This document shows positions 29,016 through 54,189 of a DNA stretch of 64,000 nt, one piece after another. Below the pieces are notes generated by a model. The model did no database searches. It was not told the DNA's origin and worked only from the letters and a program-made list of their open reading frames with translations. This DNA is from Magallana gigas (lineage: Eukaryota): the NCBI RefSeq assembly GCF_963853765.1, contig NC_088853.1, positions 25,916,001-25,980,000 on the forward strand, written 5' to 3'. Positions within the stretch are counted from its first letter, which is position 1, and the number at the start of each line of letters is the position of its first letter. Both the position numbers and the translations under genes were made by a program.

Positions 29016-29751
29016 TGTATTGCCCTGCATTTTATTTATATCATTTGGAACCTGTAACCTTTATATTTTAGTAACATTTACAAATGTATCAAACTTTGTG
29101 CAATTAAGCAAGTTTAGTGTTTCTGTTGTTTTTTATAACTAATGTGATATCACGCTTAAATTCGGTTTGCTAACCATAAGTTTATTAGTAGTGTCTGCTG
29201 TTTACGTTAAAGTAGAATTTTGTTGCGCTTTGTTTACTTAAGTTGGTTAAAGCCTGCATTTTGATACTTATCTTAATTATGGAACCTTGTCGTTTCCTGT
29301 GTGAATCTGGCCACTTTATCAGTATTTTAGACATGCAAATTCATTCCTGTAAAAGTCTCTGAACTGTCCAGACGTTATTTAACCTAGAGACACTGTAGCC
29401 GATCGCGATGTAAGTTTTGATAGTATTGCTTTAAAACTATATGTTAAGAGATATTAATTAAGAACCTTTTTAATGTTCATTTATGCGTGCTGAACTATGT
29501 TTTTAATTTGTTGACAAACTGATTTTTATTACTTTGTACGTATTCATTTATTTGTATTTTTATGTGTGTTTGTTGTAGCTTTTTACCATTCACACAAACT
29601 TCATTTCACCACTCAAGTGACACTGTGCGCATATCAGGAGCTGCGCTTTTCCTTGTTTACTTAGATGTCGTGGATAATAAAATGAAACTAGTTAACTAAC
29701 TGTAATCTGTGTTGTTAAGTTCTGAAGCAAATACACACGGAAGGCAGTACA
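29016..29751 (+). repeat. 5' LTR of BEL element 2, containing an intron-like segment (29410-29578)
   Basis: TGTATTGCC...GGCAGTACA inverted termini, AATAAA at 29675-29680, followed by GTAAAAAAGATC and then the gag ATG at 29819. Confidence 0.8.
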
Positions 29752-29818
29752 GTAAAAAAGATCACAAGTGGCCAAGTGATTCAGAATATCGGACAACCAT
29801 AGCATAAATTCGTCCATC

Positions 29819-32800
29819 ATGAGTGACCAGGAATCGCGTGAAAGAACACTAACCGAGGAAGAACTTTAGCTCTATGTAATCCAACAAGAGAAGTCATGAA
29901 ACCAAAACAAGCAACATTTGGAGTCACCTTTGCGCGTGCATTAAGGATATTGATTGACAGTGCAGCTCTTGAGAAAATACTTATTGATGTTCAACAGTTA
30001 TTTGAAGAGTATAAAGTGAAATCGTTTGAATTTCTGGAATTTCTCGGGATACAGAAAACGGAACAAAGTTCAAATGATAGAGTAAGTTTCGAAGCTTCTC
30101 ATGAAAAGAATATCCGCATAATCGAAGGAAATTTGATGAAGTCTACGCAAAGAAAGAAGCGGACATTGAAAGACAAAAGGCGGCTATGAAAGAACAAATA
30201 GCTGTACAAAATGCAGCCATGGAAAAAGAGAACGCCGAGTTAGAAGCAGATTTTGAACATTTAGCTCATGTGAGAGAAATTGCCGCTATAGAGGCAGCCA
30301 TAAAAACTCTACAAATAGAAGAAGAAAAAGTAAAAGAGCTAATGAACATTCCATTAGTTCCGAAAAGGGAATTAACCGAAAAATATGTGAACGACCTTCC
30401 AGATGAAGATTACAACACTCCTCGACTAATGTCACAACTTCCGAGTCAGCATTTAAACTTCGGTCAGCCAATTATGATGACTTTTCAGCGAAGTCAGTTT
30501 GAACCACATGCGTTCGTGAAACTTCAGAAAGAAAGTATACGACCAGCTCACAGGACTTCTAATCAAGAGCAAACTACTGTAGATCAAAATCGTGGACTTG
30601 CAACAGACTTCACACGATTCTTACTTAAGAAGAGACCAACTATAGGACTCGTGCGAATCTGGGAACGCTTGGAAGAAAGGTACGACAGCCCTGAAATGAT
30701 TGATAGTGCTTTGAAAGCTAAACTTCATCCTTCCAAAAACTATCAAATACATAGTGGAAAAAACTCTACGATCTAGCTGATATCCTTGCGGAGATTGAAG
30801 CCTTGAAGGAAGATGACATGTATGGACCTGTTTTCGTATTTTGATTCATCTATTGGGATCGGCCCCATAGTTTGCAAATTGCCAAACATGTTGCAAGAAA
30901 AATGGACAAATATGGCAGCTCAATACAACAAAAAACACCTTATCTTACATCCGCCATTTGCTACATTTTGCGAAATGGTACAATAACAAAGCAAAATACG
31001 CAACAATCCTTCGTTACAGTACGCGCAGGAATCTACAAATGGGAATGCATCTGCTTCAAGACAAGACATAAGCCTTTTGAAAAACAGGGATATCGTGCGA
31101 CAACGAATAAAACAGATATTCATATTTCCAACTCACCAGACTCAGATTGTCCCATACACAACACCGGGCATTCCCTAAACAAATGCAGATCCTTCGGCAT
31201 GAAACCAATGGCCTTTAGGTAAAAGATTCTTAAAGATATAGGCATATGTTTTAAATGTTGCGCAGGATTTCATCTTGCAGTCAATTGCTCCAATTTAATA
31301 TCATGTGAAAATTGCAAAGGCAGGAATCACCCAACGTGGTACCAGACTCGCACAGATGGCAGAAATCGCATGGCGGGGAGCAGGCAGAACGCACGTTTGA
31401 AGTGACGCCCTACAAAATACAGAAGTCAAGCCATATTGTACGCAGATATGTAGGAAATCCTTCGCAGGACAATCATGTGCAAAAACGGTGTTAGTTCGCT
31501 TGCATTCACAGAGCCAACCATCAAAAGAAAAGGTATGCTACGCTATGATTGACGACCCGTCGAATCAGTCCTTGGCAACACCATTGATCTGTGACTATTT
31601 TAAAGAAAATTGTACCAGGGAATCTACATATTTACTGTCTACCTGTTCCGGTCAAACACGCCGTACTGGTAGAAAAATGAAGAATGTCAACATAGAATCA
31701 TATGATGACAGCCACAGGTTCCGCCTACCAGATGTTCTAGAGTGTGACCAAATTCCGGGTATTAGAAACGAGATTCCAACCCCTGACGTTGCCTCTCACT
31801 ACCCTCACTCACGTGACATTGAACCCTTCATTCCACCATTGAACCCGAATGCGCAGATAATGCTGTTAAGGCAGGGACCTAATCGAGGCACACCATGTCC
31901 TTGAACAACGAATCGGACCGCCGAACTCTCATTACGCCCAGAAATTGCCCCTTAGATGGACAATAATCGGAGAAACTTGTCTCGACAAGGTACATCGTCC
32001 AAATGCTGTTAACGTCATGAAAACTTACCCGACAAGCGAAGTTCGTGTTACACTCTTTAACCCATGCATCAATTCGTTCGCTGTACGAGATGAAAATCCA
32101 GATCCATCTCGCGTACTCGGAGAAAATGTGTTTCTTCGGACAGAATCCGATGACAAACCTGGGCTATCAACAGACGACAGAAAATTCCTAGATATAATGG
32201 ACAAAGGTTTCCATAAGACAGAAGAAGGAAATTGGTCAGTTCCACTTCCGTTCCGCGTTCGGGACATTAAGATTCCCAATAACAAGCCACAAGCTGAAAA
32301 GAGAGCGAGGACCCTTGAATCCAGCCTACGTCGAGATCCGGTGAAAAAGGAACACTTTTTTTAGTTTATGCAAGGGATATTAGACTGCGGACATGCTGAA
32401 AAGGTGCCACCTATCACAGAAGAAAGAGAATAATGGTATTTACCAAAATTTGGTGTCCATCATCCCCGAAAACCAAATCAACTGCGAGCCGTATTTGATT
32501 CTTCGGCAAAATACAGAGGAATATTATTGAACGACACACTTTACACAAGTCCAGATCTTACCAACAGTTTATTAGGAATTCTATTGAGATTCCGTCGAGA
32601 ACCTGTAGCAGTCATGGGCGACATTCAGCAAATGTAGAGACTTTGTCAGTTTCCTTTGGTATGAAAATAACGACCAAGTCATTAATAGAATATCGCATGT
32701 GTGCGCATGTCTTTGGAAATAGCCCTTCACCAACAATCGCTACTTACGGACTCCGTAAAATTGTGAAAATTAGCAAAGAATCCTACGGTGATGATGTCAC

Positions 32801-33310
32801 TCATTTTGTTTGCAATGATTTCTACGTGGACGATGGGCTCACTTCGCTTCCAACATCAGACATGGCGATAGATCGAATGAAGAGAACACAGTCTGCACTT
32901 CAAACAATGGGAAATCTTCGTCTTCACAAAATTGTTTCAAACAGTGAAGAAGTGATGAAAGCCTTTCTGACCGTCCGATCTAGCTAAAAACCTGAGGGAC
33001 CTTGACCTCTCGAACGATTCACTTCCTGCTGAAAGAAGTCTTGGACATTGAATCAGATAGCTTTGTGTTCAAACTAAGCAAAGATACCAAGCCACTACCA
33101 GATGCGGAATATTGTCAACAATTAACAGCGTGTATGACCCCCTGGGTTTCCTCGCTCCAGTTCTTATCAAAGACAAGCTCATGTTCAGAGAGTTAACCTG
33201 AGGAAATGTGGATTGGGATGAAGCACTGCCTCAGTCTAAATTCGAGGAATGGGAATCCTGGGAAACTCAAGCAGTAAATATACATGTACCCGGTCTAACA
33301 ATACTAACCT
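29819..33310 (+). pseudogene. Decayed, 3'-truncated BEL/Pao gag-pol (different family from element 1)
   Basis: Fragments WERLEERYDSPEMIDSAL, CPIHNTGH...CFKC..H..C..CENC..H, YAMIDDPSNQSL, EYRMCAHVFGNSPSP and FYVDDGL, co-linear with element 1. Many stops and frameshifts; no integrase or 3' LTR seen. Confidence 0.93.
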
Positions 33311-33414
33311 CCCTTTCGTAAAATCTGGTAAATATACATGCATGTACATTGTATATGCTTGTGTGAACATTGTCATTTAAAAAAACAACAATTTAATTTC
33401 TGATTTATTTAAAC

Positions 33415-41607: not shown

Positions 41608-42972
41608 ATTTATACCCCCGCAAACGAAGTTTAGGGGGGTATATTGGTTTCACCCTGTCCATCTGTCTGTCCGTCCGTCTGTCCGTCTGTCTGTAGACGC
41701 AACTTTGTCCCCCCTATAGAATTTTTTATTACTGCATGGAACAGTTTGAAAATTTGTACATATGTTGAACACCATCTGAAGATGTGCACCTGCAATTTTT
41801 GTTAAGATCAGACAAGATTTAATGATTTTAAAACAGTTTTCATTTCCCTTATTCTATATATTGTACACTAAAGTTGAAAAGTAAGGGAGGTAATCCTTAC
41901 AGATTTTATTAATTAATTAATAGAAAACACTCTAAAATATATTTATATAAATACATCCAGATGGAGTTTTTTGTCTTTATGTCTTAATTAATAAACAAAT
42001 TTTATTTTTTATAAGTATTATATCAACTGACAATGCAAAGTTTTTGTTTGTCAATGATAAATTCTTAGGAGCTAATAAGAACATCAAAGACAAGTGTGGC
42101 TGAATTCATTTGTCCCAAGGGAGCCTTTATCTGAGCCATGGTTCAGATGGAGCATGTGTATAGGGGAAATTGATAATCTGTAAAATGGGTGATGGTTTTG
42201 GGGCTATTTTAAAACTGTTTCATGTAAACCAAAAGGTCTATCAGTATAAGGAAATAAATAATATAATTATTGATAAAGAAGTTAAACTATTTTTAGAGGT
42301 TGTTTAAATTTATTTGTCAAGTAAATTGATGAAGTGACCCTATTGGGCATTAATTTAAATGAAATTCAAAATTACTGATATGATTGTAGTGTTTTGGCAA
42401 TTTTAAAATTGTTTGTAATATTAAATTTTCTTTTTTTACATATTTTTACATAGTATGGTAATTATGGTAATGTTTTGGGAGTTTATTAAATTTAACAAGT
42501 TCATCAAAGAAAATCATAGTCCTATGGGATCAATTTTCTGATATGGAGTTCCATTGTGCCATAGGAGAAAGTGAGGAAAATTTGAAACAACTAATTGCAT
42601 CTGTCAAGACTCTTATTAGAAAGATATTGAAAGTTTTATCAACAGAGGAGATTGCTTGGCTACCGGTATTTCTATTCACTGCAAAGGGAGGGGTTATTGT
42701 CATTTTGTTGGTTTTTCTTTAAATGAATTAAATTAAAAAAATATATCATCAAATACATACATTTGTAAATGTATTACTGTTATAGATATGTATTTACAGT
42801 GAAATTCTGACAATTTTGATTTTAATTTTTCTTTGTTAACTAACTTTTTTTTTTACAATTCTAGAAATTTTTTTTTGTATGTGTTCCAAACCTTTATTAT
42901 TCAATTCAATTATTTGTCCCATTTGAAATTAGCCTAGCGGGGGTATTAGTCCCATTAGGACAGTTCTAGTTT
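41608..42972 (+). mobile_element. Non-autonomous Helentron/pearl-like element; a partial second copy lies at 53458-54189
   Basis: tttatacccccgcaaacgaagtttaggggggt start, (CCGT/CTGT)n, and end gcgggggtattagtcccattaggacagttctagttt. Segment 41637-42392 aligns by eye with 53458-54189. Confidence 0.75.
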
Positions 42973-50284: not shown

Positions 50285-50608
50285 CTGTGCCTGTTGAAAA
50301 TGTGACACACTGTCTGAACACATATGGATACCCTCAAGGAATAAAACTTGGTAAAGAACAGTTCCCTTGAATGGGGATCACACAAATTTGAGCTGAAGAT
50401 GTCTTTCATGTGTCCCACTAAAGGTGACTCTAAGAACTGGGCCTGGCTCTGTGCCTGTTGAAAATGTGACACACTGTCTGAACACATATGGATACCCTCA
50501 AGGAATAAAACTTGGTAAAGAACAGTTCCCTTGAATGGGGATCACACAAATTTGAGCTGAAGATGTCTTTCATGTGTCCCAATAAAGGTGGCTCTAAGAA
50601 CTGGGCCT
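50285..50608 (+). repeat. 164-bp tandem duplication, plus a third partial copy at 50912-51009, in an unidentified coding remnant
   Basis: ctgtgcctgttgaaaatgtgacacactgtctgaacacatatggata... starts at 50285, 50449 and ~50939. Confidence 0.85.
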
Positions 50609-51439
50609 TGCTGCAAAACCTGGCCAACCTCACGATCACACTTTCCCCGAACGAGTTGTGCATAGGACATTCTTATAATCTTGTCAGCGTTTGAAGACTT
50701 GCCTCATGGAGAATACTTTCAATGTCCCCGGAGCAGGAGGGGGAAGGAGACTCGTTGTTTTCTGCAGTGGCACAAGAAGTTGCTGTTACTCTATTGTCAC
50801 TAGCTAGAAAAATAAGATAAATTTATTAATTAATATTTATATAATGCTACAAGATATTATTATTAATGAATTAATTTTTAATGTAAATATATTTTACGAA
50901 CGATTCAAAATGATCACCACTGACATTGTCAACTGAAACTGTGCCTGTTGAAAATGTGACACACTGTCTGAACACATATGGATAGCCTCAAGGAATAAAA
51001 CTTGGTAAATACTAAACTAAAATGCAGTTTACAGGAAGTAACGTTTAACAGTGACAATTTAATCCATTTTTTATTTTTCTCAGTAACTAGTGTTTCAATT
51101 TCTTTTGGTACAATCAAAGTGAGCATTTTGCTCTGGTCACAAACTGTGAAGTCCTTTTGTTTTTCTTTTTGGTCTTCCCTTTGAACACAATCACACTTGT
51201 CTTCCAGATAAATGTTTTCTTTATCAATGTTATCTTTCATCATTGGTGCATTCAGTCCATTTGAAACTTTTATTTCGAGCTCTTTTTCCAAGCCATGAGC
51301 AAACTATAATAAATAAACTGGTCAATGCATTTTTTACAAACAGAATATGCACATAATAAGAAATGCATTAAATCCAAAGACCACAGAGGGAATACAATAC
51401 GTCGGAAACGAGTCCCAGGTGTGCAACGGAATTGAAGGG

Positions 51440-53457: not shown

Positions 53458-54189
53458 GGGGTATATTGGTTTCACCCTGTCCGTCTTTCTGTAGACGCAA
53501 CTTTGTCCCACCCTATAGAGTTTTTTATTACTGCATGGAACAGTTTAAAAACTTGTACATATGTTGAACACCATCTGAAGATGTGCACCTGCAATTCTTT
53601 TCAAGATCAGACAAGATTTAATGATTTTATGATAATATTCATTTTCCTTATTCTATATATTGTACACTAATGTTGAAAAGTATAGAGGTAATCCTTACAG
53701 ATTTTATTGATTAATTAATATTATTAAAACACTCTAAAATATATTTATATAATACATGTAGATGAAGGTTTTTTGTCTTCATGTCTTAATTAATAAAAAA
53801 ATATTTTTTATAAGTATTCTATCAACTACAATACAAAAGTTTTGTATGTTAATGATAAATTCTTAGGAGCTAATGCGAACATCAAAGACAAGTGTGGCTG
53901 AATTCGTTTGTCCCAAGGGGGCCATAATCTGAACCATGGTTTAGATGGAGCATGTGTTTAGGGAAAATTGATTATCTGTAAAATGGGCGTTGGTTTTGGG
54001 GCTATTTAAAAACTGTTTCATGTAAACCAAAAATTTCTATCATTATAAGGAAATTAATAATAGCATTATTGATAAAGAGGTTAACTATTTTAAGAAGTTG
54101 TTTAAATTTATTAGTGAAGTAAATTGAACTGACCCTATAGAGCATTAATTTAAATGAAATTCAAAATTACTGATATGATTGTAGTGTTT
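53458..54189 (+). mobile_element. Truncated copy of the 41608-42972 element
   Basis: ggggtatattggtttcaccctgtcc...gtagacgcaacttt...attactgatatgattgtagtgttt is shared with 41637-42392. Confidence 0.8.

Follow-up and report, generated by a model that had tools for sequence, protein, structure and literature searches.

In a dead oyster retrotransposon of the BEL/Pao superfamily, and in 14 related families from five animal phyla, the site at which DNA copying must start matches the element's own RNA only once a small intron inside the terminal repeat has been spliced out. This points to a splicing-dependent way of priming reverse transcription, for which we found no published description, although our access to subscription journals was limited and prior work cannot be excluded. 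The split complementarity (11-16 nt) occurs in all 15 non-tRNA-type families that we examined, from 10 species and 5 phyla, it co-varies family by family, and it is almost absent at decoy positions. Moreover, the oyster genome holds copies of the long terminal repeat (LTR) that lack exactly the predicted intron in three related lineages, which indirectly shows that these splice sites are used and that spliced RNA is reverse-transcribed. The reading we favour is self-priming of the Tf1 type by a 5' end that splicing assembles, with the transcription start and the priming step itself being inferred.

Results

We analysed a 64,000-nt stretch of DNA (hereafter the window), most likely from the Pacific oyster Magallana gigas, in which two BEL/Pao elements were found. 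Element 2, on the forward strand, is a dead, 3'-truncated copy whose 5' LTR spans 29016-29751 (736 bp, TGTATT...GTACA). No second copy of this LTR, and hence no 3' LTR, was found in the window, but a search of the whole 564-Mb assembly returned 18 matches. Alignment with ten other genomic copies, several of them solo LTRs with 5-bp target duplications such as CTAGT, ACGTC and AATAT, fixed the LTR boundaries, so that the primer-binding site (PBS) starts at the first base after the LTR. The sequence-only reading had proposed an intron inside this LTR and a PBS complementary to the spliced junction, and the features on which it rested are all present: gatcgcgat|GTAAGT with the donor G at 29410, ttgttgtAG|CTTTTTACCAT with the AG ending at 29578, an interval of 169 nt between them, a TATA-like TATTTAA at 29376-29382, and GTAAAAAAGATCACA at 29752-29766.

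Joining GAT, which precedes GTAAGT, to CTTTTTAC, the first 8 nt of exon 2 (29579-29586), gives an 11-nt stretch that in the element-2 family is an exact complement of the PBS at the LTR edge. The inferred first exon is 5 nt long (29405-29409), reading GCGAT in the window and ACGAT in most other copies, and is preceded by C, so that the motif is C-A-N4|GT. The putative 169-nt spliceosomal intron (29410-29578; GTAAGT ... tgtttgttgtAG) has the GT...AG borders, strong donor and pyrimidine tract of a U2-type intron, and would lie inside the R region: GTAAGT is kept in 9 of 11 LTR copies, and TTGTAG in all 10 copies that retain that stretch. TATTTAA, present in all 11 aligned copies, lies 29 nt before the inferred start base at 29405, although its role as a promoter element is inferred. 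Further downstream, an AATAAA polyadenylation signal in exon 2 (29676-29681) places the end of R about 40-60 nt before the LTR end, and such a signal lies downstream of the acceptor in every family where this was listed.

Comparison with sister copies both supports and corrects the sequence-only reading. The PBS (29752-29763) reads GTAAAAAAGATC in the window, where one A is a private insertion, as had been predicted, and the family state is GTAAAAAGATC; the only two other copies that keep the sequence after the LTR read GTAAAAAGATCACA and GTAAAAAGATCTCA. The 8 nt at 29579-29586 are complementary to the first 8 PBS bases in the family's other copies, and the same 8-mer and PBS occur in Saccostrea and Pinctada relatives. 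The G at 29405 (GATCGCGAT) is likewise private to the window copy: most of the other ten copies read GATCACGAT, while two carry a different single change elsewhere in the motif and the most divergent solo LTR lacks this stretch. The true complementarity is thus 11 nt, not 14. The proposal that the PBS mismatches arose by CpG decay from a CpG-rich ancestor, GTAAAAAGATCGCG, is not supported, as sister copies do not carry the predicted CG bases. Nor is such decay needed, since other CpGs in the LTR are kept in most copies and pairing simply stops after 3 of the 5 exon-1 bases, as it does in seven other families. Finally, whereas the LTRs of the two elements had been read as having no evident similarity, they are not unrelated: they share the donor block, the acceptor/exon-2 block and the U5 end, and both elements appear to belong to a clade that we call group I, although element 2, its pol being too broken, was not placed on the tree.

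The internal region of element 2 (29764-33318, forward strand) is degenerate. In a tblastn search with element-1 Gag and Pol, its gag and pol remnants match at 34-64% identity across seven pieces in changing frames, end near Pol residue 800, and show two internal deletions relative to sister copies. A sister copy at C3:6528697 of the assembly is a hit to the Pao-type peptidase profile (PF05380) inside a 2012-aa open frame.

Element 1 (7850-15295, reverse strand) is a related, young BEL/Pao copy with the same design. Its LTRs are 99.5% identical, its target duplication is CTGGG, and it hits the Pfam families Peptidase_A17 (PF05380, E 2e-44), DUF5641, rve and DUF1759. Exon 1 lies at 15119-15115, the intron at 15114-14770, the exon-2 8-mer at 14769-14762 and the PBS at 14673-14662; the junction AAAT|CCTTTTAC is opposite the PBS GTAAAAGGATTT, giving 12 nt of pairing across a 345-nt interval. 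Element 1 has separate gag (532 aa) and pol (1502 aa) frames, whereas a 98%-identical relative has one 2005-aa frame; as the two differ by 2 nt in length near 13005 (12990-13072), the window copy may be frame-broken there rather than using programmed frameshifting. Between the two elements lies a satellite rich in C tracts, a tandem array of about 11 units of 162-167 bp that are 80-100% alike (17675-19506). Elsewhere in the window, two direct repeats (41709-42234 and 53508-54032), 91-92% alike and 11.8 kb apart, flank a G+C-richer stretch (46-48 kb) with only short open frames and are possibly an old LTR pair of another element, and a 164-bp unit is duplicated in tandem (50285-50612, 98% alike), with a third partial copy 490 bp further on (50926-51009).

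A PF05380 profile scan of the genome gave at least 150 hits, and further oyster families are named here F3, F4, L054, L057 and L056/L058. In F3 the junction AGA|TTTCTTAC pairs over 11 nt across a 459-nt intron, and in F4 AAATT|CAATTTAC pairs over 13 nt across a 484-nt intron, whilst L054 and L057 each combine 11 nt of exon 1 with 5 nt of exon 2, giving 16 paired nt across introns of 476 nt and 535 nt, respectively. By contrast, L056/L058 (C1:20.74 Mb and C1:43.82 Mb) has a 133-bp LTR, no LTR intron and a classical TGG-type PBS (TGGTAGCAGAGCGTGG). Using homologues of element-1 Pol, we then retrieved loci from other species, and the architecture was seen in all nine: Saccostrea cucullata (12 paired nt), Pinctada imbricata (13), Haliotis cracherodii (11), Thunnus maccoyii (14), Lingula anatina (11), Oratosquilla oratoria (11), Mytilus trossulus (11), Xiphophorus hellerii (11) and Priapulus caudatus (11). 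The design is thus found in Mollusca, Brachiopoda, Arthropoda, Priapulida and teleost fishes, among only 10 oyster elements and 10 loci from other species analysed.

In all 11 protostome group-I families a pyrimidine-A sits 6 and 5 nt before the donor, and in the two fish families an A sits 6 nt before it. Pairing never extends past that A, so 11-13 of the first 13 nt pair (14 in tuna). Donors are GTAAGT, GTGAGT or GTAAGA and acceptors are a pyrimidine tract plus AG in every family, while the three exon bases before the donor are free to vary. In the Oratosquilla oratoria LTR, two donor-like sites (LTR positions 175-186 and 366) could each extend the PBS complement: ATCGTT|GTAAGT with a 2-nt overlap, and CTCG|GTGAGT with a clean 3+8 match.

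Several controls argue that this pattern is more than chance. With the donor and acceptor rule held fixed, 14 of 14 families tested have a split complement of at least 11 nt at the PBS, against 3 of 10,500 decoy positions, sampled at every fourth position of 3 kb of internal sequence in the same 14 elements. With donors held fixed, the run of exon-1 bases that continues the PBS complement averages 4.9 for a family's own PBS and 0.37 for another family's PBS, and 0 of 100,000 random re-pairings reached the observed total. Close relatives also show matched double changes: element 1 has CCTTTTAC with GTAAAAGG, whereas its Saccostrea relative has CTTTTTAC with GTAAAAAG. Minimum-free-energy folds of all spliced leaders pair the 5' end with the PBS. 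In an alignment of LTRs from three related families, the conserved islands are the LTR ends, the block ending CTCAAA(A/T)T|GTAAG, the polyadenylation signal, and a U5 hairpin with the PBS; the intron itself is not conserved. A maximum-likelihood pol tree gives three deep, fully supported groups, namely the tRNA-type family, the 11+5 group, and the 5+8 group, in which the two fish elements are sister to the protostome elements. The trait maps to two sister clades with 100/100 support, apart from a tRNA-PBS family.

The best evidence that the intron is spliced comes from the genome itself. Searching for the predicted exon-exon junctions as DNA, with a reversed-pattern control that gave 0 hits, we found one exact hit for F3, two hits 5.8 kb apart for L057 and three for L054, but none for element 1, element 2 or F4. 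The L057-family element has both LTRs passing directly from the last exon-1 base to the first exon-2 base; it lacks exactly 535 nt, keeps an intact PBS, and its LTRs are 93% identical. The F3-family copy (C1:63189113) is a 5' LTR lacking exactly 459 nt and joined to internal sequence, and is followed by GTAAA GTAAGAAATCTGG, a 5-nt duplication of the start of the PBS that is perhaps a scar of aberrant priming or strand transfer. The L054-like copies are intron-less solo LTRs, one with a CATGC target duplication, and two being a segmental duplicate of one insertion. Precise loss at GT...AG borders in three lineages is the signature of reverse transcription of spliced RNA; for element 2 itself, splicing is inferred by homology.

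RNA data were less telling. Three poly(A) RNA runs mapped to the 5' part of element 1 gave only 8, 92 and 32 reads, and no splice junction reached the three-read threshold, in a test that is underpowered and cannot see a 5-nt exon. Sense-strand depth in one run is zero across most of the intron while both sides are covered, another run has two reads entering the intron, and contigs of a fourth run cross both splice sites unspliced. Assembled Logan contigs carrying a 98%-identical Gag-Pol are one LTR plus the internal region collapsed at the repeat, and so are uninformative about splicing, and a metagenome scan for the element-1 junction gave 0 hits.

Discussion

We consider it probable that element 2 belongs to a large BEL/Pao lineage that primes its own reverse transcription with the 5' end of its own spliced RNA, the window copy being a dead relic with a changed start base, one extra A in the PBS and a broken, truncated pol. 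In the mechanism we propose, transcription starts about 5 nt before a strong GTAAGT donor inside the LTR, the spliceosome removes a 150-540-nt intron that lies wholly within R, and the new 5' end (5 nt of exon 1 plus 8 nt of exon 2, 13 nt in all) folds back onto the PBS that abuts U5. As in Tf1 (PMC4600332), RNase H would cut after the duplex and the short 5' fragment would prime minus-strand DNA. This rests on an inferred start site, cleavage and priming step and on an inferred 5'-spliced, 3'-unspliced state of the genomic RNA, and a 5-nt capped first exon would probably be unusually short for U1 and cap-complex recognition.

Such a design would also answer the question of how the intron is retained. 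Because the cut lies 3' of the exon junction, strong-stop DNA would carry only exon 2 and U5, and after the jump to the 3' end of the RNA it would copy the 8-mer, the intron, exon 1 and U3 from the unspliced 3' LTR, so that both new LTRs keep the intron. The intron would therefore survive as long as the 3' copy is unspliced, although how it escapes splicing in packaged RNA is unexplained, and the rare intron-less elements are what is expected when the 3' copy is spliced too. Plus-strand strong-stop synthesis would copy the primer and so rewrite the PBS in each cycle, which would account for the tight covariation.

Could the same components act differently? It is possible, though in our view less likely, that the primer is donated in trans, with a spliced RNA (a co-packaged partner or a short spliced transcript) annealing through its 5' end to the PBS of an unspliced genomic RNA. 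The template would then never need to be spliced, and the intron would be inherited without any special rule for the 3' LTR. Indeed, nearly all genomic LTR copies keep the intron, unspliced LTR sequence is present in an RNA library, and retroelement RNAs in general are probably packaged as dimers. On the other hand, folds show that intramolecular pairing is favourable, and Tf1 appears to prime within one molecule (PMC4600332), but nothing in our data distinguishes cis from trans. A more doubtful alternative is that the intron is real but the junction-PBS pairing is a regulatory switch, for example marking spliced RNA for translation or keeping it out of particles, while another RNA primes. Priming was indeed not observed, and element 2 has a TGG-initiated stretch, TGGCCAAGTGATTCAG (29770-29785), conserved in all three copies that reach it, which loosely resembles a tRNA-type PBS. 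However, this stretch, which was not compared with oyster tRNA genes, lies 18 nt from the LTR and has no counterpart in the other families, whereas the 3' end of the complementary stretch sits 0-3 nt from the LTR edge in every family, where a minus-strand primer must sit to rebuild the LTR. PBS sequences also differ between families and follow each family's own LTR, so no shared host RNA fits, and if the PBS were not copied from this primer, such strict covariation would need constant double mutations.

That there is no splicing at all, the PBS pairing with two separate pieces of unspliced RNA and the splice-like signals being incidental, seems very unlikely. The absence of a junction read is in its favour, but canonical donors and acceptors flank the interval in 15 families, DNA copies in three lineages lack exactly that interval, and a primer ending in the 8-mer but still joined to the intron would, by inference from the replication scheme, rewrite the PBS with intron sequence and not exon-1 sequence. 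Although only 3 of the 11 paired bases cross the junction in the element-2 family, a chance resemblance is the least plausible explanation of all, given the decoy and permutation controls and the 15 concordant families.

We posit, as somewhat more likely than not, that a bilaterian-wide branch of BEL/Pao retroelements replicates by splicing-dependent self-priming, with a capped first exon of only 5-6 nt joined across an intron within the LTR to make a 13-nt primer, and with the placement of the RNase H cut just past the exon junction letting both LTRs inherit the intron from the 3' end of the RNA. This would overturn the reference statement that the family is tRNA-primed, and would make the spliceosome an obligatory step in a retroelement's DNA synthesis. 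If the spliced 5' end is the primer, a whole branch of a major retroelement superfamily, present from oysters to tuna, uses a mechanism known so far only from Tf1/sushi elements, with a new dependence on the spliceosome and an exceptionally short predicted first exon. It would also explain why LTR annotation pipelines that look for a tRNA-type PBS would miss these elements, and offer a sequence rule (junction = PBS) for finding active families and their transcription starts.

Priming is the least understood step of BEL/Pao replication. The elements described here share with Belpaoviridae, as currently described, their gene content, LTRs with TG..CA ends, 5-bp target duplications and a purine tract (AGACGGGGAG) before the 3' LTR. 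However, the ICTV profile states an 18-nt PBS for tRNA-Arg or tRNA-Gly and priming by a host tRNA, whilst calling replication poorly understood (PMC8742986), and the insect member Achilles has a tRNA-Tyr PBS (PMC4580426); the main comparative survey of BEL/Pao does not mention the PBS, tRNA or introns at all. In element 2 the sequence at the LTR edge is GTAAAAA..., not TGG..., and only one oyster family seen here, L056/L058, has a TGG-type PBS; as it sits on a deep separate branch of the pol tree, both priming styles would coexist in one genome.

The closest mechanism is the self-primed reverse transcription of Tf1, Tf2, Tj1 and the Tf1/sushi group of Ty3/gypsy elements, in which the PBS next to U5 is complementary to the first 11 or so bases of the element's own transcript, the RNA folds back, and RNase H is thought to release the primer (PMC4600332, which cites the original work by Levin and by Lin and Levin). 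The primer length here is similar (11-13 of the first 13 nt, or 16), and there is a hairpin just before the PBS. By descent, however, these elements are not members of that clade: Pfam assigns the Pao peptidase (Peptidase_A17), and the homologues are BEL/Pao proteins of molluscs, fishes and others. Furthermore, whereas in Tf1 the primer sequence is contiguous in the DNA, here it exists only after an intron inside the LTR is removed.
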